Shown here piece after piece: positions 22,601 through 62,384 of a stretch of 64,000 nucleotides of DNA. Made by a program: the position numbers and the translations under genes. Origin of the DNA: Haplodiscus bocki. Its lineage: Eukaryota. The notes beneath the pieces were generated by a model. It had not been told where the DNA came from. It saw only the letters and a program-made list of their open reading frames with translations, and searched no databases. The stretch is taken from assembly GCA_965655095.1 (NCBI GenBank), contig OZ296651.1, positions 35,588,001 to 35,652,000 on the forward strand, read 5' to 3'. Positions within the stretch are counted from its first letter, which is position 1. Every line of letters starts with the position of its first letter.

Positions 22601-23229
22601 CGTGTAAACAGTTGTTTCCCGCAAAGGAAAAGGTATAAATACGAGAAACGCAAGTACGTTTTTTAAAAGATGAGTTGTAGGTTTTTCGGTATCGTACTAA
22701 AATTCTACATCGTCAACTGTTTGCTTTTATTGAAACCTTTTCTCCCATAATAGAGGAGATCGACATTTTGTTATAAATAAAATTCAACTCAGTCTTCACA
22801 ATTGACAGAACTTTTCCCTCAGAATCATGGCAACTTTGAGGAACAAAAGAAAATTAGCGGCAGTTTCGAGAGAAACTCCAGAAAATACAAGGAACAATCA
22901 GTCACAAAACACACTTAATCCGGAGATGACTGAAGAGTAAATCACCCTGGTTTCTGAAAAAATTGAAGGGAGGGTCACTGAAAAACTTTCCCAAGAACTT
23001 AGCTGGACGGAGTCACGCATTTTGGGTGCTTTGTCTAAACTCGATGAATTTCTTCTGAACCCACAAAGTCGGACTTGTTGCGTAGCTGTTCCAGGCACAT
23101 CCAGGAACAACAACTCAGAAAACGGGGAACCCACTGGGGTCGTTCCTTGAACGACCCCTGTCCCGAAGTGGTGCTCCCTGCCTGTCATACCAGTAACCTA
23201 AATGATTCAGAACAGGAACCGACATACCA
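19643..23229 (+). mobile_element. Diverged solo LTR related to the 43966 element, split by a nested LTR (parts 19643-20190 and 22023-~23229)
   Basis: Starts TGTCGCAGCACGTCTGCGAAACC and is collinear with the 43966 LTR (GACTTTAAAAGTGAATATTTGTTCCGTATGTGTTCC; TATA at ~22633; gag start ATGGCAACTTTGAGGAACAAAAGAAAA at ~22827). The 3' end and TSD are not clear. Confidence 0.8.
20191..22017 (+). mobile_element. Solo LTR (1827 bp, TG...CA) of a related family nested in the previous LTR; perfect 5-bp TSD GGTGA
   Basis: Starts TGTCGCAGCACACCTGCG and ends CATGACA. GGTGA at 20186-20190 and 22018-22022. Contains a gag N-terminus remnant (21618-21896: DYITQVSEEIEGKVTKKLSQEFSRTENRILGAL). Confidence 0.92.
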
Positions 23230-32558: not shown

Positions 32559-33713
32559 ACAAGAAAAGTTATTCATTCAGTAGGGTCGTTTTTCTTTTTT
32601 TTCAGACCAAAACTGCCAACTCTTTTTATTCAAAAATAAATGATAGCAGTGGGGTTAGGACAACAAGGTTCTCAAGTGGTAAGTTCGGGGTTCGACTCCC
32701 TCTTATGTCAAACTTTTTTACGATTTATCCTTAACAGTTTTTGATACCCGAATTAGTGAAACACTAAAGGGTTCCTTTACGAAGTTTTTCGGCATTGCGA
32801 GACAAAAAATTTTCGACGGAAAATCGCGATACTCGCTCCCCCCTCTTATCCAAAATTTTTTGATACCCGAAATTAGTGAAAAACTAAAGCATTCCCCTAC
32901 GAAGTTTTTCGATACTGTGAGACAACAACTTTTCTATAGAAAATCGTGATATGCCCCCTCTTATCCATAAATATTTTTCGATACCAGAAAACTTCCGGAA
33001 AACAGAATAGTTCTTTTACAAAGCTTTTCGTTTCGATCCTGTGAGACAAAAAATTTCGACAAAACCAAGATGCCCCCCTCCTATGCATGAAAATTTTCAA
33101 TAAAAGAATTTTTCTGAAGCACCAAAGTGTTCTCCATTGAAATATTTTGGTACAGTGAGACAAAAACATCGACGGAAAATCGTGATGTCCCCCCCTCTTA
33201 TCCATAAAATATTTTTCCCTACCAGAAATTTTCTGAAACACAGAATGGTTCCCTGGCGAAGTTTTTTCGGTCCCGTGAGATGAAAAAATTTTCGACAAAA
33301 TTGTGAAGCTTCCCCCCACCTTTGCTTGAAAATTTTCGATACCAGAATTCTTTAGAAACACCGAAAGGTTCTCCTACGAATTTTATCGGCACTGTGTGAC
33401 AAAGTTTTTTCAACGGAGTTTAGTGATATCCCCTTCTTATGTATAAAATTTTTCCTTACCCGAAATTTTCTGATTCACCGAAGTGTTCCCCAACGAAATT
33501 TTTCGGTATTGTGAGACAAAAAATTTTGAACGAAAAGTCGTGATACCCCCCTCTTTCGCATAGAAGATAGAAATCAGTGGTGGAATTGGTGTTTGTAGAA
33601 AAGTTTCGCAAACCAGATTTTACACAGTAGTCTCGTTTTTAACTGGGCAAATATGTTGATCAAAATATTTGTATTCCTGCGAACAATATGCCGGTGCTAG
33701 CCGGCCGTCTTGT
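32559..33713 (+). mobile_element. Non-autonomous element with an internal ~115-bp tandem array; Helentron/DINE-like ends
   Basis: ACAAGA at the 5' end and TCTTGT at the 3' end. Hairpin GCCGG-TGCTAG-CCGGC (33690-33705) just before the end. tRNA B-box-like GGTTCGACTCC at ~32689. Confidence 0.45.
32735..33560 (+). repeat. Tandem array of about 7 diverged ~115-bp units
   Basis: Recurring GATACCCGAAA...ACGAAGTTTTTCG...GTGAGACAAAAAATTTTCGAC...AAAATCGTGAT...CCCCCCTCTTAT. Confidence 0.9.
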
Positions 33714-43965: not shown

Positions 43966-45705
43966 TGTCGCAGCACACCTGCGAAGCCTGCGGGCAGATA
44001 ATCCCAGCAGCAAAGGACACCCCAGGCCCATCAAACAGAATCTAGGATTCTGAAGAAATCGAATATACTTTTAAACTAATGACTTTCCTTCATAAATAAT
44101 GTATTTTTAACCGTATGTATATATATATATAAGTACGTAGACACTACGTACCCCCACTAATGCATAATAACATGAATGGTATACGTGGATGGCACGTAAC
44201 AACTACGTGCCACCTAACGCTATCCCATTCATGAAAAGAGCACGTACCCTGTACGTGGAATTCTGGTGAACTGATCCTTATTGGGACGGAATAGATACGG
44301 AGCAAATGAATATTCATTGTATTTTATATTTATATTAGGTGCTATTTTATATAATTAATCAAACTAATTATTATATAAATCCACCTTTCTAAATTGACTA
44401 GTGCAGTATGTGATCTATTTAAATTGACAGCTTGTCGAGTTTCAATAGCTGGACTATTAAGAACAGAGCTTGACTTTAAAAGTGAATATTTGTTCCGTAT
44501 GTGTTCCGTCGTAACTAATCTGGTGACGTCACTAGAATTCTTAACCAATCAGATGTGCTATTAGGCTGCGCAACTTTGGTCGGCCACGTGTCGTCTACGT
44601 GCCACCGGATTCATTTCTCCTCAGTTGTACTGCGGAAGGTAGTGCTACAAGCGGCACGTAGCCGCCACGTGCCACCACGGCCAAAGTGAGCCGTAGCCTA
44701 GTAGAAACGTGGAACGGGCTAGGATTTACGCCTAGTTTGTCCCAGAAAATGAATTTAACCGATGCAACATGTAACCATGAAGATTTTCAGTATTAGTACA
44801 TATTTATTTCATACATTTCCATTTATTTTCAAGCGCATTTTTAAGTATTCTCCAATTATGGAAATTGCTTTGATCTTTACTTTATGTCGATATTTATGTG
44901 TCGGCGCGGGAATAACCACTTTGATGTCCATTTCCGACGGATCGGACCGTACTCTTTTCTGTCGAAAGATGGAAAGGACGCGGTCCGTGAGGGAAGAAAT
45001 GGATGGAAGGGTGTTTATTTCCCGCCAGAGTCGGCATCTTTTTCTTTGATATATAACATGATTAAAGTACTTTTCCCTATTTGTACCTTGACCTGGCGTG
45101 TAAACAATTATGTTTCCCGCCAAGGAAAGGTATAAATAGGAGAAATGAAAGTACAATTATTATTAATTAAATTGCCGCCTTACCGTACTGTACATTTATT
45201 AACCTTTGACTATTGGATTGAAAAGACTTCTCCCTCATATTAAAAGAGGATAATAATCTGACCAACAATACAAATAGAAAATTCAGTCTTGACCGCTGAA
45301 AAGGTTTTCCCAAGCGAAATGGCAACATTGAGAAATAAAAAAAGTTAGCAGCAGTTTCAAGAGAAACACTTGAAAGTACTAGAAGTGGGAGAGTACCGAA
45401 CATTCTAGACCCAGAATTAACTCAGGATTACATCTCTCAAGTCTTCGAAGAGATTGAAGGTAGAGTTACTAAAAAACTCTCAAAAGAATTCAGTAAAACA
45501 GAATCACGGATCTTGGGAGCCTTGTCGAAACTTGACGAGTTTCTCTTGAACCCACAAGTTCGGACTTGTTCCGTAGTTGCCCCAGGAACCTCTAGGAGCA
45601 ACAATCTAGAAAACCAGGGAACCAATGAGGATCGTCCCTCAGACGATCCTGGGCCTGAAGTGGAGTTTTCTTCCCCCATCCCAGGGGCAGAAACAAATCC
45701 TCACA
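43966..45705 (+). repeat. 5' LTR (1740 bp)
   Basis: TGTCGCAGC...ATCCTCACA; direct repeat of 57702-59439. Confidence 0.97.
44903..45138 (+). promoter_or_regulatory. LTR core promoter: three E2F-like sites and a TATA box
   Basis: GGCGCGGGAA (44903), TTTCCCGCC (45018 and 45113), TATAAATA (45131). Upstream are a CRE-like TGACGTCA (44524) and CCAAT (~44545). The same layout is seen in the diverged solo LTRs. Confidence 0.6.
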
Positions 45706-46943
45706 TGGTGACAGGAGTTACAAGAGAATTTCGTCAACACCCTCACGTGACTATGGAAACCCAAGAAGAAATTCCCTACTGTTCCACTAGTACTTCATCA
45801 GGGAAACAGAAGAAGGCGCGCTCCACAAGTCAACCTCAATTTCGCAGTGAGAATACCCCTGCGACACTGGAGGCAGACCAGATTTTGTTGGCCCTTCAGC
45901 AATTGGCAACGAACAGTAATTCAGCCAATTTCAACAACAACATTAGCCGAAATTCGAAACTGCCGAAATCTCTAACAACGACAATGCCCACGTTTGATGG
46001 AAAATCAGCGAAATTCGAGCTATTTGAAGACTTATTCCAAACGAGTTTGAAAATTCATAACCAGCTGACAGAAGATGACAAGATTAACTACTTCCACTCT
46101 CTCATGCGTGGCGATGCCTTGCAGACTTTCAAAAACATCACCAGCCCCAACAGAGAGAATCTGGTAGAAATTCTGACTGTATTCCGCAGGAAATATGTCA
46201 AACCCCAGTCAATGGCTACCGCGAAACACAAATTTCAACGACTAGTCTTCAATCCAACAAACCAGAAGTTAAATGATTTTCTTGACGAAATCCAGAAACT
46301 AGCGAAAGACGCATTCGGAGTTGCCGCACAAGCCATTATAGAACAATTCATCTATGCCAAAATGCCTCCTCACCTGAAGAAATCAATTAACCAGGCGCAT
46401 TTGGAGAATGGCACATATGAACAGATTGTGTCGCATCTTGAAAGGGAGTTGGAACTAAATGGTTTGGAAGCCCCAGATGAAATGCAACTAAATTCCGTGA
46501 TGCAACAAGACACACAACAAAACTCCGGAAAGCCCAAACCAACGTGCCACCATTGCAAAAAGCCAGGCCACTATCGAAATTAATGCCGTCAACTCAAACG
46601 AGAAAAAGACCAAGTCCAAAACAATACAGATAGTGCGACAAATCATAAAAATAGCAATGGTAGTGCCCAAACAAACTCTAACCCCAATCAAAAAGCAACA
46701 GTTGCAAATAAGGCGAACAATGCAAATAATCAAAGAGACAGGAAAACTAGACCTGTTTTCCCACCCTGTGAGACATGTGGCAGGACAAACCACTCCACGG
46801 AGAGATGCTACCTTGGAGCAAACGCAGCGAACAGACCGCCGCCCAGAAATAGACTGCCGGAAGGACAAAACCAAGCCCAACAGAGAAATACTCAAAATGG
46901 CTCAGACGGGAATGTCCAAGCTGCAGCCCAACCTTTAAACTAA
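45319..46943 (+). pseudogene. gag: Gag (~541 aa reconstructed), starting inside the LTR; two CCHC knuckles; 1-nt deletion at ~45338 and premature TAA at 46581
   Basis: The 3' LTR copy gives the intact start MATLRNKRKLAAVSRE (59052). Capsid-like MPTFDGKS..FELFEDLF; knuckles CHHCKKPGHYRN*C and CETCGRTNHSTERC; stop at 46941-46943. Confidence 0.92.
45706..45718 (+). other. Primer-binding site TGGTGACAGGAGT (tRNA-Leu-like), inside the gag frame
   Basis: TGG directly after the LTR-terminal CA. One mismatch to the tRNA-Leu-type PBS TGGTGTCAGGAGT. Confidence 0.75.
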
Positions 46944-46987
46944 CTGCGCCACGTTTTCACTCCGGAAATGCACGTCACATACCGGAG
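46934..46987 (+). promoter_or_regulatory. -1 programmed ribosomal frameshift signal (T TTA AAC) with a downstream stem
   Basis: The heptamer is in the correct phase directly before the gag stop. The -1 frame is open from 46934 into the protease ORF. CTCCGG/CCGGAG can pair at ~46960 and 46982. Confidence 0.85.
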
Positions 46988-49900
46988 ACTAATAAAACAA
47001 CTAAACTTCCACCAATTCCCGAGGTTGTCTGGCAGCAACCTACGGAGACCAATACAAAACAAGATGATGTTAATAATATTACTAAAGACTCAACTTCAAA
47101 GACTGATGTAGCACGTCAAACTACGCCACCTAAGGGAACCCAACCACAGAAATACGTGGACACCACGGAACAATCTTCAGGAAACAAAACAGGAAATGAA
47201 CCAGTATCGTTCCCCAGTTGCTCCAAAGACTCCTCTACCAATAGCCAAAATACAGAGCAGCACATAACGACTACCCCTAACAAAGAGATGACAACTCCAC
47301 CTCTCAATACAGCAACCCCACTAATTGAGGAAAGGCTAGTGAGAGATGAGCAGACAAATGAGTTGTACCTCCCATTAACATCTACAGTAGTCCTGAAACG
47401 AAAGCAAGAAATGCTTTATGTGCCTCTGGATTTTGAGAACAACCATACGGTAGATGCCCTGGTGGACTCAGGAGCATTTGTCAGTGGAATCGCCCAGGAT
47501 GACTTGGAAATGATAAAACAGAAAGCCCCGAATAACATTCTCAAAATCGACAATCCGCCCAATTTTCAAATACAAGTAGCTAATGGCCAGTTAGAGAAAC
47601 CATTATCAACAGCCACATTAAAATTTGAAACTGGAGATAACTCTTTCGCTGAACATTTCGTCGTAATGAAGAAATTAACGGGACCTATAATTGGGTTGCA
47701 TTTTATGAGAAACAACAGTGTAGTCATTGACACGACACACGGCCTCATACATTTTCCCCACTTGACGATGCAGGTGAAAACAGCCTCAAGTGAAATAACC
47801 ACCAAACCGCAACCAGTCATCATGGACGAAGACCTCACAATACCACCAGCGACAACAAAAACAGTCACAGCCTACAATGACCATCCCTCGAAATGGAACA
47901 CAACAGGCACTGTGACACCGTTGGAGAAGTTTACAGAAACAGCGAGTCTGCTGATTTCCCATTCAATGTCAACAATAATTGACAAGAGAATAGCAGTTAG
48001 AGTGACCAACACAACGGAATCACCATATCTCATCAAAAAACACACACAGATTGCAGAATTCTCCGTGGTTACTCCGGAGCAATCTAAACACATCAAACCA
48101 GTAGATATGGCAATCCTCAGTATGATTCCACAAGGCGATCCTGACCTAACTGCCTACCTAAATGAACTTCTCAGGACCAACAAACCCGAGCAGCAAGCGA
48201 ACACGTTCTGGTTCCCGACACCCGATAATCCTGGAAAGCCTGAGGATCACACCCCAATACAGACAAGAATCCTCAAGGAATTGAACGAACTGAAGGACAA
48301 GGAAAAACTCAATCCACAAGAGAGCGCAGAATCTCGAAACAAATTTCTCAAACGTTTTGATTGGACTGACACGCTTCTTACAGAAACGGAAAAACAAGCA
48401 AATGAAGACATCCTGGTTGAATATCATGATATATTGGCCAGACACAGAATGGATATTGGGATGAACACCGAGTTCCAGGTGAAAATAACTCCTAAAGACG
48501 ATAAAGCTGTATATAGCCAGAGTCTACCCATGCCAATCCACCTGAAAGAAGACCTGATTGTTGAACTGGCCCTAATGCACAAATATGGAATCATTACAGT
48601 ACTGCCCTTTTCCAAGTACGCGAGCCCAATAATTGCACAAAGGAAGCCTAACGGAAAACTACGTCTCCTTGTGGACCTACGAAAAATCAACAGTCTGATT
48701 GCAGATGACTATACTAATAACAATCATCCAGTTAGTACTCTGTCAGACGCAGCACAACACTTGGCAGGAAAGTCACTGTTCTGCAAACTAGATTGGTCCC
48801 AAGCGTATCACTGTTTGCAGATGGCAGAACAACGGTCAGTGGAGATGCTCGCATTCAATTTTGCCAGCAGAACCTTTGCCTACAAAAGACTAGAACAAGG
48901 TCTCAGCAGATCTGTGTCTGCTTTTTCAAGTTTCATGCGTGAGTATTTGGACCCAGTCGTCAAAGCTGACCAATGTGCTCAATACGTAGACGACATTGGA
49001 ATCGCAGCCAACAATGCCACGGACCTTACCCGGAATATCCGAGCAGTCTTCAAGTGCATCCGCCAAGCAGGATTGAAACTGACAATCGAAAAATGTCATT
49101 TTGGAGTCAGAGAAGTTGAGTTCCTAGGACGAACAATTTCACCAGAAGGAATCTCACCACAAGCCCGGAAAATCCAAAACTTCCTTGCTAAACTTCGATT
49201 CCCCAAATCAAAGAAGGCATTGCAGCGCTATCTGGGATTCGTGAACTATTACAGACATTATATTCCCAGAATGGCTGAAAAACTCAATCCGTTCTACAAA
49301 TTGCTTAAAACGGAAGTGCCAATCAATTTTACGTCAGAATTGAAAGAAACATTTGATTCAGTCAATGCAGCTCTCAGCAATGCGTGCGAATTAGCATTGA
49401 AACAACCCATTCCAGGAAAGTAGCTTGTCTTAATGACAGATGCCAGCTTCAGAAGTGCGGGATACGCCCTAATGATTGAAGATAACCCCGATCAAAAAAT
49501 ACAGTCAAAGCGGAAAACCTATGCCCCCGTGGCATTTGGCTCAAAAATTTTCTCCCCTGCACAACTTAAAATGTCTATATACTCCAAGGAATTTCTTGCA
49601 ATCTACATGGCATTTCTTGAATTTGCATACATTTTGTGGGAAGCAACAAAGCCAACGATTGTCTTAACAGATAACAAGTCTGTCACCCGCTTTTTCCAAA
49701 CGAAGGCAATCCCCCCAGCACTCTGGAATGCATGTGATTATGTATTGCAATTCAATTTTAAAATAGCACACATTGCCGGATCAGTCAACACAGCAGCTGA
49801 CTTTCTCTCTAGGCTTGAACTTAAAGTTACGGAGAAGATACGTGTCAAAATTCGGGAGGATATTCAGACAACACCCATTGAAGTGACCACGTTGTCCTCG

Positions 49901-51814
49901 GATGTTGCTGACGAAGAACAAGTTTTCTTCACTTGCGCAGACAACGCTCAAGAATCAGAAGAACAGACTCTTGAACGGAAAAAGCAATCGCGACAAAATG
50001 CGAAGCAATGGGCCGCGAACGAAGAACTACTTGCTTTAAAAACGAGTGTGAAAGAAATCACAAAGATCGACGGGAACACTACGTCGTTTTCCATCAACGG
50101 AATTAAAGCAACTGCAAGAATACGAGTAGAGCAGGACGTTGATCTTGTGTTGAAGAACCTGAAACTGAAAATTTTAGGCCAACCATTTGATGAAGTGTTA
50201 ATAACGACAGATTCGCGATACAAACATTACAAGGCAAATGAAGATCGCATAATCCTTAAAGATGGCCTATTATACAGAAAATATTTTGGAGAAACAGGTA
50301 GCGTCAAATACTACCAAATTCTTATTCCCAAGCAATTAGTTAAGGAAGTCCTACGCAGCTTGCATGGAGAATTTGGCAAGCACCAGGGAATTTTCAGAAC
50401 AATAATTGCTTGCAGGGAAAAATATTACTTTCCGAAAATGGCGCAATTAATCAGGGAGTGGGTCATGTCATGTGAGCAATGCATCAAAGAATCCCGTGTT
50501 GATCCCAGCCTCACCCGCCCTCCCCTGCAAAATCCAAACGAACACATTACTGCGCCCGAAGATGCAATTCAAATTGATTTGGTACCGGAATTACCGCCAT
50601 CTGGTGGTTACGAAAACATTGTGACAGCTATGGATGTGTTTTCCCGCTTTTTATTCGCGTACCCGACAGCAAATCAAGACGCCAAAACAATCGCTAAAGT
50701 CTTAATTAACATAATGACTAAGCACGCCTACTTACCAACGACGCTCATCTCAGATAAAGGTACAGCCTTTACGTCACATGTAATTAAAGAAGTGGCCGGC
50801 GTCCTTGGCGTTACTCTAAAGGACGCCACTACAAAGCACGCTCAAACAATTGGGCTACTTGAGCGATCTCATGCGTCAATCAAGAAAGCATTGAAGATTG
50901 AGACAGGCGAGCGGCGATCACTTTGGCATAAATACGTCAACATTGCAGTTCTCAATTATAACACTTCTTATCACACAAGCATTGGCTGTGAGCCAAGCCG
51001 AGTCTTTCACGGCAGAATTCCCTACAACATTCTTGATTTAAAATTGGGAATTCGCCCACAGCAACAGCCTATTCCCACTTCGCAAATTGCCCAAGATATA
51101 CTCGAGCAAACCGAAATGATCCACCAAGATGTACGCAAGAACACTATGCAAGCGTATACTAAATACAAGGCCTACTATGACAAAAAGGCCAACGCTTCAA
51201 AACTCAAAGAAGCAGATTATGTATATATCTTGCAGCCGAAAGCGGATCATCAAGGAAGCAAAATTCCATTCACAGAATTTCGATGGGTTGGCCCGTATAT
51301 TATCGAAAAGGCACTACCAAATAATAACTATCTGGTACGCAAAATTGGCACAAACAAGACGCAATTGCTTCATCGAATGAGAATGCGTCAATTTACACCC
51401 GGCCAACCACCAGCAGACATCACAGTCAAGCCGCAAGATTATAAATCCGATACCGAAGTGAATATTAATCACGACGATTTATATGCAAGGGCGTGGGAGT
51501 ATGATTTCGAGCAGCCAATTTTCGACGCCGAGAACGACAACGCGGCGCCACCCAATCCACGAGAAATTCCAGTACAGTCTGATTTTTTAACGGAGGAAAT
51601 GAGGAACACGCAAGGAGCCACACACGAGTGTTCCCCAGAAATTTTTCCCCCAACGGACGAAACTAGCGACGTAGCAGATACGTATACACATGTGGAACCA
51701 GATGTGGGGACAAGCTCGGAACAACAAGGAAATAGCCCGAGCAACCCCCGCAGCTCCAAATACAACCTGCGTCATAACCCGAAGCCGAATTGCAATGACG
51801 ACTACAGATATTAA
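46934..51814 (+). pseudogene. pol: Pol (protease, dUTPase-like spacer, RT, RNase H, integrase); single in-frame TAG at 49421
   Basis: PR LVDSGA; RT LRLLVDLRKIN and YVDD; RNase H TDAS and ADFLSR; integrase HHCC (H..GKH..CEQC), IDLV/SDKG/LERSH and GPY. ORFs 47156-49423 and 49433-51814 are in the same frame. Confidence 0.95.
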
Positions 51815-52093
51815 CTTGTCTGTGGAACAAGTGTGTTCCACGTATTGCGCACGTAGACATTCCTCCAAATGTGTCCCACGTAGTGCGCACGTGGGCGCTC
51901 CCTAAAAATCCAAACAAATGCGCTACGTGGCACGTAGGTGGCAGCCCGAACTGACTGACACACCTCGACTATGGCTATTCCCTGGCGACTAACTCATCTG
52001 CTACACAGTAAAGACTATTCCAAAACACGGCCACTAAGACTAAATTCATCAATATTCCATTATATATTTGGCCGGTTATTCCGCTATTATTCA

Positions 52094-52179
52094 TTTATTT
52101 CCTTTTTTCTTTTCTGTTTTGGCGGACTAATAGACTACTATTATATATATACATGCATTCAACAATAAATATCAATAAA
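52094..52179. terminator. Convergent candidate polyadenylation signals between pol and the antisense gene
   Basis: AATAAA on + at 52164 and 52174. AATAAA on - at 52094-52099, ~170 nt after the antisense stop. Confidence 0.5.
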
Positions 52180-52269
52180 GAAGGCAGTTCAAGGTGGCAC
52201 AACGAGCAAATCAATCAAATTGGCGAACGACAAAACAATTAAAAATGTTCAGATGCTAAAAAATTCTGT

Positions 52270-55200
52270 TTATGGAAAGCCCATTTGAAACACAGGAGCA
52301 GCGCGGCGATTGCGCCCACTCCGGCGAGACTTCCCATGAGAAGATGGAGCAGCTAAGGCAGAAGCAAAACTCGGGTCCTCTACCAAAGACCGCCTTGGGG
52401 GACTAACAAGGGGACTTGACACCTCGAACCTCCGTGGCAACTTCACCGGAATACGGGTGATTTTCCTCTTCCTCTTACTGGAAGGCGAACTAATTTTACT
52501 TGGCCCAGGAGAACCAAGAACAGGCGGACAAACAGGCACGTATTCAACACGACCCTCTTCCACAACGTCCAATATTCTCACCCCTGGCCTTGATGTTGAC
52601 TCAACTCGGGGGGCGCTTCCATGATGCCAACGCTCACTCGTGTCCTTGGCAGAACGACGACGCAGAACTACCCGATCCCAACAGGAGCACATGTCAGCAA
52701 TCACCTGGCTTGAAGAAGCGGACGCAACAACATTCCACGGAGCATACACAGGACTTGACGTGATGCTATCAGCGATGGCAACAGATTCAGACAGCATAGT
52801 CAAGCCTGTCTCCAAAAAGAAATTTCTCTGGGTGAAGTGCGGGCTCCGAACAACGTCCTCCACGCAAAGCAAGACACCACGCACTTCCTCTTTCCCAATG
52901 GCGACACGATCCAAATTGATTGTGAACTCATCACTTTTTGCTGATGACCCAAGGATCACAAGAGCCGTCAACTGGAACACCTGAAATACAAAACTGCACG
53001 AAATGCTGAGACAACTTTCAGGGGCCAAAAGATACAACTTGATTGCCTACGATACATACTTTGTACAGGTGCCGACGAGCGCGGAAACCAGCCTGTCCGG
53101 AACAGAACGACAGGACGTCACCTACGTCAGGGCGGCTCCTCGTGGACGACCGCTCCAGCTGCCGCTGTTCTCGAACAAAAGACTGGTACTCAGCCCGGCA
53201 CGCCTCTACCTCGCTCCCCCTGATCCAGCCTCTCTCCAGCAGCCCATCCACAAGCTTATTGAAAAGCTGCAGCGGAGCAACGTCGTCCCCACCAACCACA
53301 ATTGCAGGGCAAAAACAGCTTAACCCCTGCCCGATGACTGAGCGTGAGGCAACGGTGGAAAGCACGCAACTCAAAAAGTCTTCCAGAAATCGACGTGCAT
53401 CACGGCGGAATTCTTTTTGTAGAAATTGGCTAGCAACTTTGCCCAACGCAGCCATTACACGAGTGCCCTCCAGAAAGTGCTCGTCATCAATCGAAGCAAA
53501 ACGGGAATGATTGGCAACAACGTACTTTTCCCATTGTTCAACAAGAGGCAAAGACGATGCCTTCTTTACTTTCTGCAGCAAGCAGTACACAAATCGCGCC
53601 AACTCTCCAAAGGCGTGGTAGCCCTGGTCTGCTGCAGTTGGAGGATGAACGAAATTATTGGCAACTGAAACAGAAACATGTGTTAGAGACAGGGCGACGA
53701 TTCAAAGCGCCCACCAAAGTATCCTTACCATGTTCAAACTTCCACCCAAAACAAACAAGGAATCCCCATGGAGCAACACTCGTGTGTTCCCGGAAGGGGG
53801 AGCCAGCACGATTTCCGCAACCAAGGCACCCCCTCCCAACTGGAACAGAGACAAAACAGTAGGAGTACTTACAGATTTCAAGAAGGAGATGCAACAGACG
53901 GAACTTCGTGCGAGCCATCTGGTCCATGTAAAAGTACCCGTCAATTCCCTTCCTCTGAAACACAACGCAATACAATGAAGACGGGTACGGAAAGGGCACC
54001 AACACAAAGAAAGAAGGAAGACCTTACCACAAGACTATCCCCATCGTCTTTGCGTCCCGTCTCCTTCAAGTAGGAGACAATCAGGGGCCAAACGCCGACA
54101 ATGTTGGCAACCACCTCGACCAAATGGGGCATACTCAAATCGTTGGTCAGTATGGCTCTCCTCAAAGCGGGCCGGGAGGACATCCAATCCCGCGTCTCAG
54201 CGCCCTTTAGCCGATTGACGATAAACTCAGTCATGGCCAGCCCGTCCAAACTCCCAAACACACTCGAGGAGGTTCGTTGCAAACAACGTCTAAAGAGCCG
54301 AAGATCAAAGACCGGGTAGTCAATCAGTTTTTGCCGATACCCACTGCCCAGGTATTCGCGAAAGGCCTCCAAAAGCACAGTCGAGCCACCGATGATCGAC
54401 ACGATCTCCACCTCAGACCCAAGTGCATCAACCACCCGCCCCAATGCAGTGATCTCCTGATGAGGATCGCTGCTGTAGCGATCCAGGGTGGCCACACAGA
54501 CTCTCCTGAAGGTGTCCACATCCCAAGTGCGTAGAAACACCCGCACCTTGTCACCATCCTCCTCGAACTCCACACTGCACATTCCGTGTGACTTTGCCCA
54601 GTTCATGCAACGCGAAAGGATCCTCGGGTACATCCCATTCAGGATGATGGACTGAAACGACAAAGAAAGGAATGCACATGGGCCACGTAGAACATTACGA
54701 GCAACTTATAACTACTAACCAAGACCTCGTCGCGTGACCACGTAACGTCAACGTTGACGCGTACGGCAGACAAAGTGAACTGCGCCCAGAGACGGTAGAC
54801 CAGCTCATAGCTTCCACCCAGACGCAGCACTTCAATGAGGGAGGAAACCTTGGCCATCACCCCCAAGTTCGGGTCCACAGCACCAGTCTCGTCAACGATG
54901 ACGTCTTCACAGAAAGGGTACTCCCTGTCTCTCACGACCAAAGGAGCCCCCATGATCCTCTCTCGCTGGCGCTCTACCTCGGAAGGACTCATGACATTTC
55001 CCTCATAGTCAAGCACTTCCCAGCCTGGCGTCTCCAAACGCAACCGTTGATCGCGCGGAAAGTGCTTGCTGCCCTGAAAGTGCCGCAAAATCTCGTGTTG
55101 GCCATGAGTCAATACAGATACGTCCTTGAGACAAATTCTGCTATAAAAATGACTGGGTTTTGTCGCTGCATCTGTAGGCCCAGTCACAAAGAATCGCCCA

Positions 55201-56625
55201 ACTTCACCAGTTCCCCAAGCTCGCTTCATCTTATAAGCCTTCCTCGAACGCAATCTCCGCCGTGGCTCGCCAGCATCACTTTCGTCACCACTCGTGTCAG
55301 TGGTATCGCCCAATCGAGGAACAACACGCGCTGGCCCCTGCTCCAACTGCTCCAACCGACTCAGAACATTATCTAATCCTGTGAACAGCAAGTCTGCATG
55401 AAAACGAGGACAAAAGAAATAATGAGCAAAATGCGATGCACTGAACTAAAGAAGGAAAGAAAACATTCTGTGCTGCTGAAGGGAATAATACTAACTCGAA
55501 ACAATTGGGTCCAGAATCTGCGCCCGCTCCTCAGCACAAACAGAACGGCACAAACTAACAAGCTGGTGACCTGTCGCATTGATGGGCGTGATAGCAGGAT
55601 CAACGGAAAAATTGTCTAAAACAAAACAATGGAAATGAGGAACCATTGTGGGACGCCACTTAGCACTTCCTCAACCTTCAATTGATACTAACCATCGTGG
55701 AAAGCCTGCTCCAGCAATGCCCGACTGTGGTCACGACCTGCGAAGTCAACTGAAGTTGACGTACACCGCGCCAAAGGTACCAGGCGACGCGAAATTCTGG
55801 CACTTCTTGACCTCCTCTGTCCCCGCACTTCAGCTTCTGTCGAAATGTCCCCCTCCCCAAAATCAGCTCCTGGGACTTCTACTGGACCTGAAAACAGAAC
55901 AGAGATGAGATTGACTAAATCTCCCCCACTACAAACACGTAGAATAATGCATACTTGACTCGAAATCCATGGGAGCATTTACTGTAGGGCCATGACCGTC
56001 CTCACCTGACGAGCGCCCAACCTCCACCTCTGCCCCGGAACAAACCCGAGAACAAGAACCACTAAACTCTGGCTGACCAGCAAGTTCACCAGATGAATCA
56101 AACACTGAAACAAAGAGCCCCATGATGCCTTCTTCATGAAGAGGCGCGCGCTGTTTACTAGCTTATGGGAAATATGAGTGGCCACCATATGAATCCAGCA
56201 AAACAAAGCTAATGAGATATGAAGAAAGAAGACTCACGTGTGGGCAAACGAGATGTGTCAACAACACCCTCTGCCAAAGTCTCTACAGCAAAATTCGCCC
56301 GTGCCAATGCATCAGCAAACGTCCAGCCTTCGGACTCTGCACCAACAGCTGCACTGACCCCACTCATGATGTCAACAAAACTGTCGTTGTCATCTGCCTC
56401 TCCTTCACGATAACCTACAGTGCTCTCCTCACCGGAAACAGCATTGCCAGACTCTCCAACATGATCTTCGTCCTCCTCCACGATCGCAGACTCTCCAGGC
56501 ACAACGCAAACACTTGGCATCAATCTCACAGTCGATGTCGTCTCGTCAATCGCCAACTCCCCCTCCGCTGGACTTGACCCGCCCTCAGTGAAGAGAGTGG
56601 CCCATCTATTCTCCGAACTTGACAT
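52270..56625 (-). CDS. Spliced antisense accessory gene, 9 exons, 1177 aa: acidic N-terminus, BED-like Zn finger, degenerate hAT-transposase-like body, basic Ser/Arg-rich tail
   Basis: Exons: 56625-56238, 56104-55955, 55887-55693, 55615-55496, 55378-54720, 54651-54028, 53954-53873, 53664-53060, 52980-52270. They total 3534 nt with no internal stop. All 8 introns (67-208 nt) are GT..AG with pyrimidine tracts and matching phases. Confidence 0.88.
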
Positions 56626-57052
56626 TCAGAAATTGGTGAAAGACGGGGCTAATCAGCTAATGAGCTAACAATTTACATGGTGGATTTACATATTTATTCA
56701 TAAATTTCTTAATTATTCATTTAAAGTCTGATTAATTTATCTGCCAGCAATGACGTCAGCATGCATTTTCAAGGATGCATTGAGGAATCATACTCAAGAA
56801 GTCCTTGAATTTAGAAACTCCATTTTGAGATTTGTTTACATCTCATCAACTTGAATGGCACTCTTAACTCTCTACTTTCATTGACGCGGAGCAGCGGCGC
56901 GGGAACATCAAATGAAATCCCGCTTCAGAAAAGTGGACGACTATCATCAGCAATACTCATCACTCTACCAATTTTTATTCATCGCAACCAGTTGCTTCAA
57001 TTATACTTATTAAACCTATTTTTCTTCAACTCATAATCCGATCAGCATCACA
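56626..57052. promoter_or_regulatory. Putative internal bidirectional promoter
   Basis: 427-bp AT-rich gap between divergent ATGs. Contains TGACGTCA (56751), GGCGCGGGAA (56896) and TAAATCCACC on - (56679-56688); all three also occur in the LTR. Confidence 0.55.
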
Positions 57053-57781
57053 ATGTCACTCAATTCATCAGTAAACTCCACGGACTCTGACGTATTTTAT
57101 GTTGAGCAACTATCAGACGAGCCCAGTCCGCGCAGAAATAACACGCCGGACATACTCAACTCGACAGCGCGAACAGACCATCAAGCGATGAGGATGCCAT
57201 CATTCTCCACGATCGCATCCCCTCAGCCTCATTTCGTGACGATCGATGATGATTCCAACCAGATTACAATGGCTTATGGGTTTGGGCAGCAGCACCCGAT
57301 CGTTCCCCCCAGCCTGAATGATTTAAACCTGCCACCCAATCCCTTTAGTATATTAGCGACGATGGCCATAGCTAACAATACGGAACATGACAACGAACAC
57401 TACAGCCCGGAGTCACCGGACCCGTCACTACCATCATCCATATCGTCGCCCCCAATGAGCGTCAGTGCATTCCACAGTTTCGAAACGACGCACAGTACAA
57501 CGGACGACAACAACTTTTATTATTCGTCCGACAACGATCCAAGAAGGATATACTGGGAGACGTCTCTTAACGAAACCTTCGAGTCAAATGAGCCCAGAAG
57601 AGTGTATCCTATCGAAAGCCCTCCATCCACACCGCCGCCGCCGCCCCGAAAACTGAAGAGAAAGTTGAGCCTGGGAATGTCCTTTCCAAAAGAGGGGGGA
57701 GTGTCGCAGCACACCTGCGAAGCCTGCGGGCAGATAATCCCAGCAGCAAAGGACACCCCAGGCCCAACAAACAGAATCTAG
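57053..57781 (+). CDS. Accessory 242-aa Ser/Pro/Asp-rich protein overlapping the PPT and the first 80 bp of the 3' LTR
   Basis: Intact ATG-to-TAG ORF of low complexity. Contains PPPPRKLKRK (NLS-like) and a terminal HTCEACG. No signal peptide or TM segment. Confidence 0.75.
   Translation: MSLNSSVNSTDSDVFYVEQLSDEPSPRRNNTPDILNSTARTDHQAMRMPSFSTIASPQPHFVTIDDDSNQITMAYGFGQQHPIVPPSLNDLNLPPNPFSILATMAIANNTEHDNEHYSPESPDPSLPSSISSPPMSVSAFHSFETTHSTTDDNNFYYSSDNDPRRIYWETSLNETFESNEPRRVYPIESPPSTPPPPPRKLKRKLSLGMSFPKEGGVSQHTCEACGQIIPAAKDTPGPTNRI
57688..57701 (+). other. Polypurine tract AAAAGAGGGGGGAG
   Basis: All-purine run directly abutting the TG of the 3' LTR. Confidence 0.92.
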
Positions 57782-59439
57782 GATTCTGAAGAAATCGAAT
57801 ATACTTTTAAACTAATGACTTTCCTTCATAAATAATGTATTTTTAACCGTATGTATATATATAAGTACGTAGACACTACGTACCCCCACTAGCGCATAAT
57901 AACATGAATGGTATACGTGGATGGCACGTAGCAACTACGTGCCACCTAACGCTATCCCATTCATGAAAAGAGCACGTACCCTGTACGTGGAATTCTGGTG
58001 AATTGATCCTTATTGGGACGGAATAGATACGGAGCAAATGAATATTCATTGTATTTTATATTTATATTAGGTGCTATTTTATATAATTAATCAAACTAAT
58101 TATTATATAAATCCACCTTTCTAAATTGACTAGTGCAGTATGTGATCTATTTAAATTGACAGCTTGTCGAGTTTCAATAGCTTGACTATTAAGAACAGAG
58201 CTTGACTTTAAAAGTGAATATTTGTTCCGTATGTGTTCCGTCGTAACTAATCTGGTGACGTCACTAGAATTCTTAACCAATCAGATGTGCTATTAGGCTG
58301 CGCAACTTTGGTCGGCCACGTGTCGTCTACGTGCCACCGGATTCATTTCTCCTCAGTTGTACTGCGGAAGGTAGTGCTACAAGCGGCGCGTAGCCGCCAC
58401 GTGCCACCACGGCCAAATTGAGCCGTAGCCTTGTAGAAACGTGGAACGGGCTAGGATTTACGCTTAGTTTGTCCCAGAAAAAGAATTTAACCGATGCAAC
58501 ATGTAACCATGAAGATTTTCAGTTTTAGTACATATTTATTTCATACATTTCCATTTATTTTCAAGCGCATTTTTAAGTATTCTCCAATTATGGAAATTGC
58601 TTTGATCTTTACTTTATGTCGATATTTATGTGTCGGCGCGGGAATAACCACTTTGATGTCCATTTCCGACGGATCGGACCGTACTCTTTTCTGTCGAAAG
58701 ATGGAAAGGACGCGGTCCGTGAGGGAAGAAATGGATGGAAGGGTGTTTATTTCCCGCCAGAGTCGGCATCTTTTTCTTTGATATATAATATGATTAAAGT
58801 ACTTTTCCCTATTGGTACCTTGACCTGGCGTGCAAACAATTATGTTTCCCGCCAAGGAAAGGTATAAATAGGAGAAATGAAAGTACAATTATTATTATTT
58901 AAATTGCCGCCTTACCGTACTGTACATTTATTAACCTTTGACTATTGGATTGAAAAGACTTCTCCCTCATATTAAAAGAGGATAATAATCTGACCAACAA
59001 TACAAATAGAAAATTCAGTCTTGACCGCTGAAAAGGTTTTCCCCAAGCGAAATGGCAACATTGAGAAATAAAAGAAAGTTAGCAGCAGTTTCAAGAGAAA
59101 GACCTGAAAGTACTAGAAGTGGGAGAGCACCGAACATTCTAGACCCAGAATTAACTCAGGATTACATCTCTCAAGTCTCCGAAGAGATTGAAGGTAGAGT
59201 TACTAAAAAACTCTCAAAAGAATTCAGTAAAACAGAATCACGGATCTTGGGAGCCTTGTCGAAACTTGACGAGTTTCTCTTGAACCCAAAAGTTCGGACT
59301 TGTTCCGTAGTTGCCCCAGGAACCTCTAGGAGCAACAATCTAGAAAACCAGGGAACCAATGGGGATCGTCCCTCAGACGATCCTGGGCCTGAAGTGGAGT
59401 TTTCTTCCCCCATCCCAGGGGCAGAAACAAATCCTCACA
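57702..59439 (+). repeat. 3' LTR (1738 bp), includes an intact gag N-terminal ORF (59052-59456)
   Basis: Direct repeat of the 5' LTR, followed by TSD ACCAT. Confidence 0.97.
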
Positions 59440-60756
59440 ACCATATTGTGTTATAAAATTGCTTTTATAACAGGGGAACAGGAAACAATATGAAGTAGTG
59501 GAATTTACACCTTTATGGGTTTTTTTTGGCTATAGAATTTGCATTACCATCTTATTGACAATATTTGCTTCATACATATAGAACGTACACGTAGTTTTGA
59601 GGATATGCAGAGAACTCAATGTTTCCCTCATGCGGACATCGGTTGGATTGCTAGGGGCTGATTTCTCCGAAATTGACATTAGGATTCTGTTTCCATAATT
59701 TAGCGGCTTTCTTTTTCTAAGATATAGGCGACGTCACCGGCGGCTCTTGGCAAAAAACGGCCCATCTTCAATTTTTATTCCAAAAGTGTGCTATTAAATG
59801 AAATGTGCGCGGCAAATCTTAGAATGATAGCGGCGGCATGGGTTGAAAGTATGTGGGATCTTGTAAAAATACTGGCGCTTCACAGAAAAAACTTGACCTA
59901 GCCAGTTATCTTCCGAAAATACTCTTTTTTACTTTGTTTTACTTATCTTATTGATTTTTTTGTCAGATTCATCAGTTGACTACAAAAACTGTACTGAATG
60001 AATTCATCTTCTCTGGAAGTGATGCATGAAAAATCATGGAAACAACGTAAAATGATATCCAGTATTCCAGTCTACACTATATCTTTGATCGAACTTTTGG
60101 TAACATTCATTCTGTTGATAGATTTACAGAAATCATCGAAATCATAAGGAAGAATAGCATAATCTAAAGCGTACATGACATTGCCAAGAAACCACAACTG
60201 AGGGTCAGATATCTCCTGAAAATATTGCATGACTTTGGTGCTGGTTTCACTAGATTTGATTTCTGGAAGTCTTTCGGGGTTTCTGAACAGCTCTGGATAC
60301 TTCGGCAATACTTGCTGAAGGTGTTCCGCAAGGTTCTCAAAAAGCACCACATCATTCCATACAGCCGAGCATGAGAAACACCTGTCCTGGACCACAGATT
60401 GCCAGTGCCACCACGTCCAGATTGGGGTATTAATCTGAAATAAAACTGATGACTTTGAATAATCAATCAGATCTCTCTAGCTTTTCTTTTTGGTTCTAAC
60501 AAAATTTCAAGCTATCAGGGATGCAAATCATTCAGAATATATTCTGCGTATCTCCTATCTGATTAGGAAGCTTATAGTTAACGAACTCGTTGGAAGTGAA
60601 CCCACACTTGATTTAAGTTATATATTTAGCTATGTTTATTGTTGAAATACTTGGTAAAAATTCAAAGCAAGTTTTCGCCAATATCGAAATTTCCGTTAAT
60701 GCTGCTCAAAAAATTCCGCTTACATTTTGTTTGGCAACTTTTTAAAAAAAATTACC

Positions 60757-62384
60757 TGTCACAGCGCATCTGCGAAGCCTGCGGGCAAGCAATACCAAAA
60801 GAACGGACATCCCCTGACTCTCAAAAAACTAATATTCCCCATTTTATCAAACAACTCACTCATCTTTATGTTTTATTTGCATGTAAAAAGTTCCATAAAA
60901 AATGGATCACTTCAATGAACTGATCTAGACTAGGACGGAACTCTTATGCAGAAAAATGTAATCACCTAGTAGTTTATTATAGCCTAAAAGGTGCCATATT
61001 TAAAACCACTTTTTCACTTAAAATAATATAAATCCACCTTCCTAATTGTACAGGAAAAACCTGGTGTAAAATTATTTGAAATTGATCCTGTCAATGAAGT
61101 GAAACAGTGCTACTGCAATTAAACTTGCAAGACTCTAGGAGTGAGCAGTTGTCCCGTACGTGTTACGTCGTTACTACTCTGGTAATCTGGTAACATCAGA
61201 GTCACTCCGACTAATATGAAAGTGCTAGCTTGCCTTGCTAAGAAAGCTGAAGACGGATCAACTCCGTATTCCTTCCGTCACGAGGCATAGCCAATATACT
61301 TAACTTAGTGCTACAAGCAAACGTGGAACTGTTCTGGAACATTTTAGCTGAAATGAAGAACATTTTGAAAAAGTTCATAGTTTCTACCTAGTTTTAACCA
61401 TAACCTTCCAGTAAGTGACCATAAATTTCTTTTGGTTTCAACATGATTTAGTTGTGACCATTCTTTATTATTATTTTCTTTGTAATCTCAAAACTTATAT
61501 TGTGATTTATTTTTGCCTTCTGGGGGATTCGTAAAATTTCTTTGTTTTCTCCGCAATGGCCTTCAATTGACTATTTTTGTTAGCAATTAACGTTGCAGCG
61601 CAAGAATATGAACTTTAATGTTCATTTCCGACGGAATAGGTCCGTTCATTTTCTGTCGAGAGATTGAAAAGGCTCGACCCGTGAAAAAATTGGATGGAAA
61701 GGTAATTAATTCCCGCTAGAGTTGGCATTTTCTGCCTTGTGAAATTTATGATGAAAGTACGCTTCCTCGTTTTGTACCATGACTTGTAGTGTAACCGTAT
61801 ATCTTTCCCACCAAAGAAAATGTATGAATAGGAGAAACGGAAGTACTAACTTTCACGTATCATTGTAACCCTTGACAGTATTCCGTGACTGACGACTTCA
61901 AGCAGTGCAACCTTCCGAGTTGTTTTACATGTTAAAAACTCTCATGCAGTCATTAAAACTGCCCAATTTTTTCCCGTGGAATGGCAACACGGAGGAAGAA
62001 GAGAAAAGTAGCAGCTAAGAAAACTTCAAGAAAAACAACTTAGAAACCACTTGTCACGAGATACAACCGCTTCTAGAGTCCATGAAGACTATATTATTCA
62101 GATGCAAGGGGAGGTAAAAGGGACAGTGTCAAACAATTTATCTCAAGTGTATATTAGGACAAAAGGTTGAATTTTGGGCGCTCTGTCGAAATTACATGGA
62201 TTCCTTTTGAACACAGAGGGCCAAGTGCAACCCGGAACCGTTTCGGGAACATCCCAGAACTCCAATGGAAAAATTCAGGAACTCAGTGAGAACCGTTCTC
62301 AGATCGACTATCCTCCTTAAGTCGTTAACTCCGTTAATTGGGCCCCTCAGTCTATGAATTCGGACCCACATGAGGTTTGTTACA
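60757..62384 (+). mobile_element. Old solo LTR of the same superfamily, TSD TTACC/CTACC
   Basis: Starts TGTCACAGCGCATCTGCGAAGCCTGCGGGCA (frame reads SQRICEACGQ). Gag start ATGGCAACACGGAGGAAGAAGAGAAAA at 61981. Ends GTTACA. Confidence 0.8.

Follow-up and report, generated by a model that had tools for sequence, protein, structure and literature searches.

A Ty3/gypsy-type retrotransposon family, apparently from a stony coral, carries a conserved antisense gene with eight predicted introns

Introduction

Additional genes on the strand opposite to gag and pol are documented in several LTR elements. Antisense accessory ORFs located between pol and the 3' LTR are found in plant Ty3/gypsy elements (maize Grande gene23, rice RIRE2, Silene/angiosperm Retand with the TRP28 domain, and Phaseolus PvRetro13) and in fungal Boty elements, and antisense genes are found in deltaretroviruses (PMC7264820, PMC11963269). 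The Grande ORF is transcribed from its own internal promoter and its product is nuclear, and a DNA-binding or regulatory role is suspected (PMC7264820, PMC11963269). Boty-like elements of Botrytis cinerea, with the antisense gene brtn, are non-plant Ty3/gypsy elements with an extra antisense gene (cited in PMC7264820). The deltaretroviral antisense genes include HTLV-1 HBZ and HTLV-2 APH-2. HBZ starts in the 3' LTR, has a spliced mRNA with one intron and encodes a small bZIP protein, a nuclear regulator that also acts as RNA. In metazoans, including cnidarians, errantiviruses are Ty3/gypsy elements with a third gene after pol that co-evolves with pol (PMC13524379). That gene is in the sense orientation, has no introns and encodes a membrane fusogen.

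Here we analyzed a 64,000-nucleotide stretch (hereafter the window) of contig OZ296651.1 (Haplodiscus bocki assembly GCA_965655095.1, positions 35,588,001 to 35,652,000, forward strand). An initial annotation made from sequence alone had proposed that an LTR retrotransposon in the window carries an intact gene with eight introns on its antisense strand. We show that this gene is a conserved component of a 15.5-kb Ty3/gypsy-type retrotransposon family, apparently from a stony coral, which also carries a small additional sense ORF. We found no description of an antisense gene this large and intron-rich in an animal element.

Results

Eight GT-AG introns join the minus-strand exons into a single reading frame

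We first examined the gene model. All eight proposed introns begin with GT and end with AG. Seven of the eight end in a T-rich YAG acceptor of the TTTCAG/TTTTAG type, while intron 4 ends TTCACAG. Joining the nine exons (Table 1) gave 3534 nt, corresponding to 1177 codons plus one terminal stop, with an in-frame stop directly upstream of the ATG. A stop-free run of this length is not a chance event, as (61/64)^1177 is about 1e-25. The observation made in the initial annotation was confirmed, including the matched LTRs, the position between pol and the polypurine tract (PPT) and the lack of terminal inverted repeats, with the qualification that "intact" holds only for the antisense gene and orfX (below). 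In this copy gag and pol each carry one in-frame stop, which the other sampled copies lack at the pol site and most lack at the gag site.

Table 1 Features of the element and its antisense gene in the window.
Positions	Strand	Feature	Details
43966..45705	+	5' LTR	1740 bp, TG...CA; 98.4% identical to the 3' LTR; preceding flank ends ACCAC
45706..45717	+	Primer-binding-site-like sequence	Starts TGG directly after the 5' LTR; not matched to a tRNA
45753..46940	+	gag	DUF1759/Retrotrans_gag; two CCHC knuckles (CX2CX4HX4C); in-frame stop at 46581-46583 inside the first knuckle; five of the six copies aligned across this site have no stop there, whereas copy L002 also has one
46853..51814	+	pol	Protease-like, RT, RNase H, integrase with H2C2 finger; frame -1 relative to gag; in-frame stop at 49421-49423 between RT and RNase H
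51815..52269	.	AT-rich spacer	Between the convergent pol and antisense-gene ends; minus-strand AATAAA at 52099-52094 (present in copy L003, not canonical in copy L004); plus-strand AATAAA at 52164 and 52174
52270..52980	-	Antisense gene exon 9	aa 942-1177 plus stop; KRKRK cluster at aa 1110; conserved C-terminal tail
53060..53664	-	Antisense gene exon 8	dN/dS 0.12-0.13
53873..53954	-	Antisense gene exon 7	
54028..54651	-	Antisense gene exon 6	Lowest dN/dS, 0.11-0.12
54720..55378	-	Antisense gene exon 5	Conserved CxxC...H...H zinc-finger-like motif; the window copy departs from the family at the first Cys
55496..55615	-	Antisense gene exon 4	
55693..55887	-	Antisense gene exon 3	
55955..56104	-	Antisense gene exon 2	Least constrained, dN/dS 0.5-0.9
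56105..56237	-	Intron 1	Unusually conserved (89-93%), more than the flanking exons; rich in palindromes
56238..56625	-	Antisense gene exon 1	ATG at 56625; acidic N-terminus, pI 4.1
56626..57052	.	Intergenic block, candidate bidirectional internal promoter	Between the divergent antisense gene and orfX; conserved TGACGTCA at 56751, CGGCGCGGGAA at 56895 and ATCCCGC at 56917; the first two also occur in both LTRs
57053..57781	+	orfX	Conserved ORF of 242 aa; S/P/N/D-rich; runs through the PPT into the 3' LTR
57688..57701	+	Polypurine tract	Abuts the 3' LTR
57702..59439	+	3' LTR	Following flank begins ACCAT

The host element is of the Ty3/gypsy (Metaviridae) type

The element has long terminal direct repeats, a primer-binding-site-like sequence, a PPT, a gag with nucleocapsid knuckles and the pol domain order PR-RT-RNase H-IN. 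Pfam matches were obtained in the order RVT_1, RT_RNaseH, Integrase_H2C2 and rve, with only a weak protease match (E = 0.004), and the Pfam models typical of BEL/Pao did not match. The best PDB relatives were foamy-virus PR-RT, Ty3 RT and integrase, and PFV integrase. The sequences flanking the LTRs, ACCAC and ACCAT, match at only 4 of 5 positions and are a putative 5-bp target-site duplication. Rfam and tRNA scans of the window found nothing.

The antisense gene is a fixed part of the family

We next asked whether other copies carry the same gene, as had been proposed beforehand as a test. Nineteen other loci, from the same ENA assembly and from Cyphastrea coral metagenomes, have the same layout. 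The same architecture was found in loci L001-L010 and L019, including lineages whose pol is only 42-64% identical to each other or to the window. The conserved coding region thus occupies the position that defines the aORF-3R class of Vicient & Casacuberta, antisense to gag-pol and between pol and the 3' LTR. Pairwise identities of the antisense gene and of pol correlated (r = 0.88, 35 non-independent pairs). Clustering at 90% identity gave 1420 and 1654 clusters for exons 5 and 6, respectively, indicating that the family is abundant.

Comparison of splice sites across 18 loci showed that 175 of 192 dinucleotides are kept. Intron lengths drift, ranging from 60 to 269 nt, and are not multiples of three, whereas exon lengths hold; L010, from a Cyphastrea metagenome, has all nine exons of identical length. 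ORFs that seemed to span two exons (P0181, P0187 and P0291) proved to be in-frame read-through of intron 5, not intron loss. Because GT and AG dinucleotides are common, we considered whether scattered chance ORFs could have been stitched together by permissive choice of intron boundaries. This reading is refuted by the length of the frame, by the retention of the same junctions in 18 other loci with indels confined to introns, and by purifying selection acting in that frame.

The dN/dS of the spliced frame was 0.16-0.23 in nine of ten pairs, with dS of 0.41-0.81; the tenth pair, L003/L004, gave 0.39 at a dS of 0.30. Every other full-length copy examined has at least one stop or frameshift in the gene. 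Given that the LTRs of the window copy are 1.6% diverged, an open 3.5-kb frame there is not unlikely by chance (we estimate P about 0.3), and this copy lacks the first Cys of the conserved pair and sits in an element whose gag and pol are broken. Values of dN/dS among transposon copies reflect selection on the transposing lineage, and do not distinguish whether the protein helps the element or restrains it.

The G+C content of the region (about 51%) differs from that of gag-pol (43%) and of the flanking genome (37-38%), which is compatible with a foreign origin, and LTR elements do transduce host sequences (reviewed in PMC7264820). We therefore considered whether the gene is a passenger, transduced once from the host in antisense orientation and carried without benefit to the element. 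This appears very unlikely. A passenger would decay neutrally along transposing lineages, whereas here dN/dS is about 0.17 across 3.5 kb and all eight splice-site pairs persist through divergence that reaches dS 0.8 and 30-55% protein identity. In addition, no host paralogue or annotated full-length homologue appeared in a search of a representative protein library that returned 740 clusters; the top 150 were all fragments of 474 aa or less, and the 10 that were looked up were unnamed fragments held by ENA only. Copies from this one genome filled the top of every list. Synonymous sites of the antisense gene mirror the plus-strand A>T, C>G bias of pol, which is consistent with long residence in the retroelement.

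The flanking sequence contains a second accessory ORF and a conserved promoter-like block

Examination of the region between the antisense gene and the 3' LTR revealed a second accessory ORF on the sense strand, orfX, which the initial annotation had missed. Its pN/pS is 0.22-0.42 in frame compared to 0.7-2.2 in the other frames, indicating purifying selection, and it was found in all lineages with this region. Unlike the env of errantivirus-type elements, orfX has no hydrophobic segment (maximum Kyte-Doolittle over 19 residues of 0.64), and it had no Pfam hit. A conserved 427-bp block with CRE-like and E2F-like motifs separates orfX from the antisense gene; promoter function of this block is inferred from sequence alone. 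Neither strand has an AATAAA or ATTAAA hexamer inside the 4356-bp gene, and a single minus-strand AATAAA lies 171 nt past the stop, although it is only partly conserved among copies. Intron 1, despite its conservation, has no stable predicted RNA fold.

The predicted protein is an orphan

We then searched for relatives of the 1177-aa product. Pfam scans of every large exon at E <= 0.01 and E <= 10, and of all members of three exon alignments, gave only sub-threshold noise, including weak C2H2-type zinc-finger hits in 3 and 2 of 36 exon-5 members. No homology to a described antisense-ORF protein (TRP28/PF04195, SMC-like, gene23) was found, with no Pfam family, Transposase_28 included, matched at E <= 1-10, so membership of the aORF-3R class is by architecture only. 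Profile searches of PDB sequences with four exon alignments found nothing, a scan of IMG/VR found no relative, and no similarity to the element's own gag or pol was detected. AlphaFold2 models of exon 6 and exon 5, built from 42- and 36-row alignments, were of low confidence (pLDDT 56.6 and 62.5), and Foldseek found no match to them at E <= 0.001.

The broad layout of the protein, a zinc-finger-like motif followed by a large domain of about 700 aa, is that of many eukaryotic transposases, and plant Retand antisense ORFs carry a Transposase_28 domain (PMC11963269). This raised the possibility that the gene descends from a DNA transposon, for example a hAT-like transposase gene, either as a still separate nested transposon or as an old capture now domesticated by the retroelement. 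The first form is excluded. No terminal inverted repeats or 8-bp target-site duplication flank the gene (the only repeat pair bracketing it is a 16-nt, 81% AT-rich match), its position is identical in all lineages and its divergence tracks pol. The second form lacks support, and we consider a transposon origin unlikely. The top Foldseek hit of the exon-6 model was Hermes hAT transposase, which recurred in the list, but this hit was not significant (E = 0.019, probability 0.35, TM 0.20), came from a low-confidence model and was given no weight. No Pfam transposase, BED or hAT-dimerisation match was found, even for an 81-aa peptide spanning the exon 8/9 junction, where a C-terminal motif had appeared hAT-like; that motif is not conserved between lineages.

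Discussion

We conclude with good confidence that the region is an integral accessory gene of a Ty3/gypsy-type LTR retrotransposon family that is abundant in what appears to be a stony-coral genome, in the order 5'LTR-gag-pol, a nine-exon gene on the opposite strand, orfX and PPT-3'LTR. Our comparisons establish that the gene sits at the same place in every lineage sampled, diverges in step with pol, keeps its eight GT-AG introns and exon lengths, and has evolved under purifying selection in its spliced frame, so element lineages that kept transposing had a working protein. Splicing itself, the start site, the poly(A) site, transcription from an internal promoter and the function of the product are inferred from sequence alone.

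The interpretation offered in the initial annotation was thus partly supported. Its proposal that the gene is a permanent component of the element held, the introns are real by comparative criteria (conserved splice sites, drifting intron lengths, constant exon lengths and dN/dS of about 0.17), and its reasoning that antisense introns survive retrotransposition fits the retention of all eight introns in every lineage sampled. The gene's own promoter and poly(A) site, which it also proposed, remain putative. Its description of a host-like gene is unsupported, as no host homologue or known domain was found, it missed the further conserved sense-strand ORF (orfX), and the arrangement is not the wholly undescribed kind of system that it suggested.

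In the mechanism we infer, the genomic RNA of the element is the plus strand, on which the introns read as CT...AC and the poly(A) signal of the gene as TTTATT, so that neither would be processed and both would be copied intact at each retrotransposition. The gene would be transcribed leftward from the conserved 427-bp block, spliced by the host spliceosome and polyadenylated in the spacer just beyond the pol stop. Its product would be a protein with an acidic N-terminal third, a conserved CxxC...H...H motif, helical domains and a basic KRKRK-containing tail. Our best guess, which is tentative and rests on composition and a short motif, is a nuclear, nucleic-acid-binding regulator that acts for the element, functionally like the accessory or antisense proteins of complex retroviruses and the antisense ORF proteins of plant Retand/Grande elements. 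The antisense mRNA would be fully complementary to 4.4 kb of genomic RNA and may additionally feed small-RNA pathways, a role that has been proposed for plant antisense ORFs (PMC7264820). That the transcription unit matters mainly as RNA, pairing with genomic RNA to generate regulatory siRNA or piRNA with an incidental reading frame, is very unlikely, as this does not explain frame-specific constraint (dN/dS 0.11-0.23 in most exons), constant exon lengths or conserved splice phases, although it may coexist with a protein function.

The position and orientation of the gene are those of the plant antisense ORFs, but there is no sequence or domain relationship, the host is an animal, the product is much larger, eight conserved introns split the gene where neither review mentions introns in the plant ORFs (PMC7264820, PMC11963269), and a second, divergently oriented sense ORF lies next to it. 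Compared to HBZ, which is likewise an antisense protein-coding gene in the 3' part of a reverse-transcribing element, the start lies about 1.1 kb inside the element, separated from the LTR by orfX, there are eight introns, and no bZIP or other known domain was found. No homology to the Boty antisense gene was detected. Compared to errantiviruses, the large gene is antisense and has no env-like features. The size, the eight introns and the animal host appear to be new, whereas antisense genes between pol and the 3' LTR are not.

It remains possible, though less likely than not, that a cnidarian retrotransposon lineage has independently evolved an accessory module resembling that of complex retroviruses. 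In this view an internal bidirectional promoter that uses the same factor-binding motifs as the LTR would drive, leftward, a spliceosome-dependent nine-exon gene for an orphan zinc-finger-like nuclear protein and, rightward, a disordered 242-aa protein, and both would be needed for, or would tune, propagation of the element. As far as we could find, this would be the most gene-like, intron-rich cargo known to be stably maintained inside an LTR retroelement.

Such genes are easily mis-annotated as host genes or masked as repeats in coral genomes. Retroelements are expected to be compact and free of introns because they replicate through processed RNA, yet here a 4.4-kb gene with eight introns has been kept intact in structure through deep diversification of an abundant animal retrotransposon family. 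This extends the antisense-accessory-gene phenomenon from plants, one fungus and deltaretroviruses to early-branching animals, and provides two unstudied orphan proteins whose selection can only come from the element's own life cycle. It shows that antisense placement is a workable, evolutionarily stable way for a retroelement to own a fully cellular-style gene.

A nine-exon antisense gene within an LTR element

We first rebuilt the gene model of the initial annotation directly from the genomic sequence. All eight proposed introns began with GT and ended with AG; seven of the eight ended in a T-rich YAG acceptor of the TTTCAG/TTTTAG type, whereas intron 4 ended in TTCACAG. The nine exons joined into 3534 nt, corresponding to 1177 codons with one terminal stop, and an in-frame stop was found immediately upstream of the ATG. 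The gene lies inside a 15,474-bp LTR element whose LTRs are 1740 bp long, 98.4% identical and end TG...CA. A TGG-initiated PBS-like sequence follows the 5' LTR, a polypurine tract abuts the 3' LTR, and the flanking pentamers are ACCAC and ACCAT. On the plus strand the element encodes gag (DUF1759/Retrotrans_gag, two CCHC knuckles) and a pol with RT, RNase H, H2C2 finger and integrase core in the Ty3/gypsy order, the nearest solved relatives of pol being foamy-virus PR-RT, Ty3 RT and integrase, and PFV integrase. What the annotation had observed is confirmed.

Coordinates of the features described in the text
Feature	Position	Strand	Remark
LINE-like (non-LTR) retrotransposon remnant	29157-31686	+	endonuclease (Exo_endo_phos) ORF followed by two RVT_1 fragments
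Tandem repeat	32738-32990		120-bp unit, 2.1 copies, 82% matches
LTR-like fragments	19637-23171 and 60756-61846		69-82% identical to parts of the element's LTR
5' LTR	43966-45705		
TGACGTCA and CGGCGCGGGAA in the LTRs	44524/58256 and 44902/58634		also in the intergenic block
In-frame stop in gag	46581-46583	+	inside the first CCHC knuckle
In-frame stop in pol	49421-49423	+	between RT and RNase H
Minus-strand AATAAA	52099-52094	-	in the spacer before the pol stop
Plus-strand AATAAA (two)	52164 and 52174 (52164-52179)	+	about 350 nt after pol
Exon 5 of the antisense gene	54720-55378		conserved CxxC pair
Intron 1 of the antisense gene	56105-56237		palindrome-rich
ATG of the antisense gene	56625		
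Best-conserved non-coding stretch	56750-56849		86-91% conserved
TGACGTCA palindrome	56751		intergenic block
CGGCGCGGGAA	56895		intergenic block
ATCCCGC	56917		intergenic block
orfX	57053-57781	+	242 aa
3' LTR	57702-59439		

The LTR-like fragments are probably solo LTRs or remnants of related families, and the LINE-like remnant sits in a strongly A-rich stretch (AT skew up to 0.37 at 30-38 kb).

The antisense gene is part of the element family

We next asked whether the gene belongs to the element. The exon-5 ORF alone found 1420 protein clusters (at 90% identity) in a large protein collection, of which at least 120 were 78-97% identical to the query and came from ENA, and a profile of exon 6 found 1654 clusters. 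Ten loci were retrieved by exact protein look-up, all from ENA analysis ERZ26859043, ranging from 91% DNA identity down to lineages where the antisense protein is 30-55% identical to that of the window copy and pol 42-64%. A single scan of JGI metagenomes found nine further related loci, all in two data sets, Ga0126342 and Ga0126343, the latter described as the Cyphastrea sp. 2 coral metagenome (bioRxiv 10.1101/391565). Canonical GT-AG introns, about 38% G+C and contigs of hundreds of kilobases fit the coral host rather than its dinoflagellate symbiont, although this last point is an inference. The resulting sample of 19 loci is small and was chosen through protein hits, so that copies lacking the gene would not have been found this way. 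Within it, every locus long enough to judge had the same layout, with the antisense gene followed by pol and gag on the other strand, and a further conserved ORF between the 5' end of the gene and the LTR.

Pairwise identity of the antisense protein tracked that of pol (r = 0.88 over 35 pairs, which are not independent). No terminal inverted repeats bracketed the gene, the only bracketing pair being a 16-nt, 81% AT-rich match. This excludes a separately nested DNA transposon and a one-off transduction.

Conservation of splice sites and reading frame

We evaluated the introns by comparison between copies, so that splicing itself is inferred from sequence alone. In four copies at 76-84% DNA identity, GT and AG were kept at almost all junctions and gaps accumulated in introns (up to 25 gap positions), whereas exons had mostly no gaps, though a few carried frame-breaking ones. 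Introns other than intron 1 were generally less conserved than the adjacent exons. In an alignment of the window copy plus 18 loci, 175 of 192 splice dinucleotides in the other loci were kept, some of the losses lying in visibly decayed or poorly alignable copies, and intron lengths ranged from 60 to 269 nt without regard to the reading frame. L010 (the Cyphastrea metagenome contig Ga0126343_10001174, 11.8 kb) has all nine exons at exactly the lengths of the window copy and all 16 splice dinucleotides, and L013, another sampled locus at about 64% protein identity, keeps all eight introns with different lengths. The L010 contig is circularly permuted (pol - antisense gene - orfX - one LTR - gag - pol), which could reflect a tandem array, a one-LTR circle or an assembly collapse; its gag, the RH-IN part of pol and orfX align without stops.

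Nei-Gojobori dN/dS of the spliced frame was 0.16-0.23 in nine of ten pairs, at dS 0.41-0.81, while the tenth pair, between the sampled copies L003 and L004, gave 0.39 at dS 0.30. The ratio was lowest in exons 4, 6, 7 and 8 (0.08-0.22) and highest in exon 2. No lineage sampled has lost an intron, and ORFs that seemed to span two exons proved to be in-frame read-through of intron 5. This is what one expects if the element always replicates through its plus-strand RNA, on which these introns are not splice substrates. Synonymous sites of the antisense gene showed the mirror image of the plus-strand A>T, C>G bias of pol, which is consistent with long exposure to the same strand-specific mutation pressure.

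Condition of the window copy

The antisense frame and orfX are open in the window copy, but gag and pol each carry one in-frame stop. The other copies that align across the pol site have no stop there, and at the gag site five of six have none, the exception being the sampled copy L002, so the window copy is not autonomous. The other full-length copies that we checked each have their own lesions: L010 has one stop in the antisense gene, L019 (another sampled copy) has one stop in the antisense gene and a frameshifted pol while its gag and orfX are open, and L001-L004 have frameshifts. With LTRs 1.6% diverged, an unbroken 3.5-kb frame is by our own estimate not improbable by chance, and the evidence for function therefore comes from the family-wide substitution pattern, not from the intactness of this copy. 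The window copy also departs from the family at the first cysteine of the conserved CxxC pair in exon 5, and its protein may be impaired although the frame is open.

A second accessory ORF, orfX

Between the ATG of the antisense gene and the 3' LTR lies a plus-strand ORF, which we call orfX and which the initial annotation had missed. The predicted protein is disordered-looking, S/P/N/D-rich and acidic, with no hydrophobic or transmembrane segment, so it is not env-like, and the ORF reads through the polypurine tract into the LTR. It is present in all lineages with this region, and recognisable at 35-47% identity in the most divergent ones. pN/pS was 0.22-0.42 in its own frame against 0.7-2.2 in the other two frames, with 85, 52 and 149 variable sites at codon positions 1, 2 and 3, respectively, indicating purifying selection in its own frame. 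The element therefore has two accessory genes, arranged head to head.

Inferred expression signals

The 427 bp between the two ATGs contain the best-conserved non-coding stretch of the region. The TGACGTCA palindrome and CGGCGCGGGAA of this block also occur in each LTR, and further GCGGGAA copies lie in the LTR. This hints at shared transcription factors, although the sharing of short motifs is weak evidence. Downstream of the antisense stop, the 455-bp AT-rich spacer before the pol stop holds one AATAAA on the minus strand and two on the plus strand, whereas inside the 4356-bp gene neither strand has an AATAAA or ATTAAA hexamer. The minus-strand signal is present in L003 but not canonical in L004. 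Full-length genomic RNA would have to read through the two plus-strand hexamers, so a shorter gag-pol mRNA is conceivable.

Intron 1 is 89-93% conserved, more than its flanking exons, and contains the palindromes CTTCATGAAG, GGCGCGCGC and GTGGCCAC. It has no stable RNA fold on either strand and no Rfam match. It may be a DNA-level enhancer, which is our guess, or an alternative promoter.

Sequence and structure searches with the predicted protein

Homology searches, which were run on exons and exon alignments, assigned no function to the protein. Pfam was silent for every exon, for members of three exon alignments and for a peptide spanning the exon 8/9 junction, the only recurrent signal being sub-threshold C2H2 zinc-finger models in a few exon-5 members. 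Profile searches of PDB sequences were empty. AlphaFold2 models of exons 6 and 5 reached pLDDT of only 56.6 and 62.5, and no Foldseek match reached E <= 0.001; the Hermes hAT transposase topped the exon-6 list at E = 0.019, which we treat as a lead only. The sequence itself shows an acidic first 130 residues (pI 4.1) and a low-complexity stretch to about residue 340, a conserved block with CxxC...H...H followed by an invariant P-G-W, largely helical middle exons under the strongest constraint, and a basic tail (pI 11.7) with KRKRK and a conserved C-terminus.

Discussion

Antisense additional ORFs between pol and the 3' LTR are documented in maize Grande, rice RIRE2, Retand elements (97% of clusters with a TRP28 domain), PvRetro13 and fungal Boty. 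Grande has its own internal promoter and a nuclear product, and a regulatory role has been proposed by analogy with retroviral accessory and antisense proteins (PMC7264820, PMC11963269). Neither review mentions introns in these ORFs. A 2026 survey of animal Ty3/gypsy elements with a third gene deals with sense-strand env genes and does not mention antisense genes (PMC13524379), and full-text searches for coral or metazoan LTR elements with antisense intron-containing genes found nothing pertinent, although the literature covered was incomplete and this is absence of evidence only. The element shares the architecture of the plant class but fails the homology criterion, and what sets it apart is an animal host, a 1177-aa orphan product, eight conserved introns and a paired divergent sense ORF.

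The interpretation in the initial annotation, that the element permanently carries a spliced gene with its own promoter and poly(A) site, is partly supported. The joined reading frame, its common layout with gag and pol in the sampled family and the low dN/dS of the spliced frame rest directly on the sequences compared, whereas all statements on transcription, splicing and the role of the protein are inferences. From its sequence features we infer, tentatively, a nuclear, nucleic-acid-binding regulatory protein. Because selection is visible among transposing lineages, the protein must matter to the element's own propagation, whether by promoting or by moderating it.
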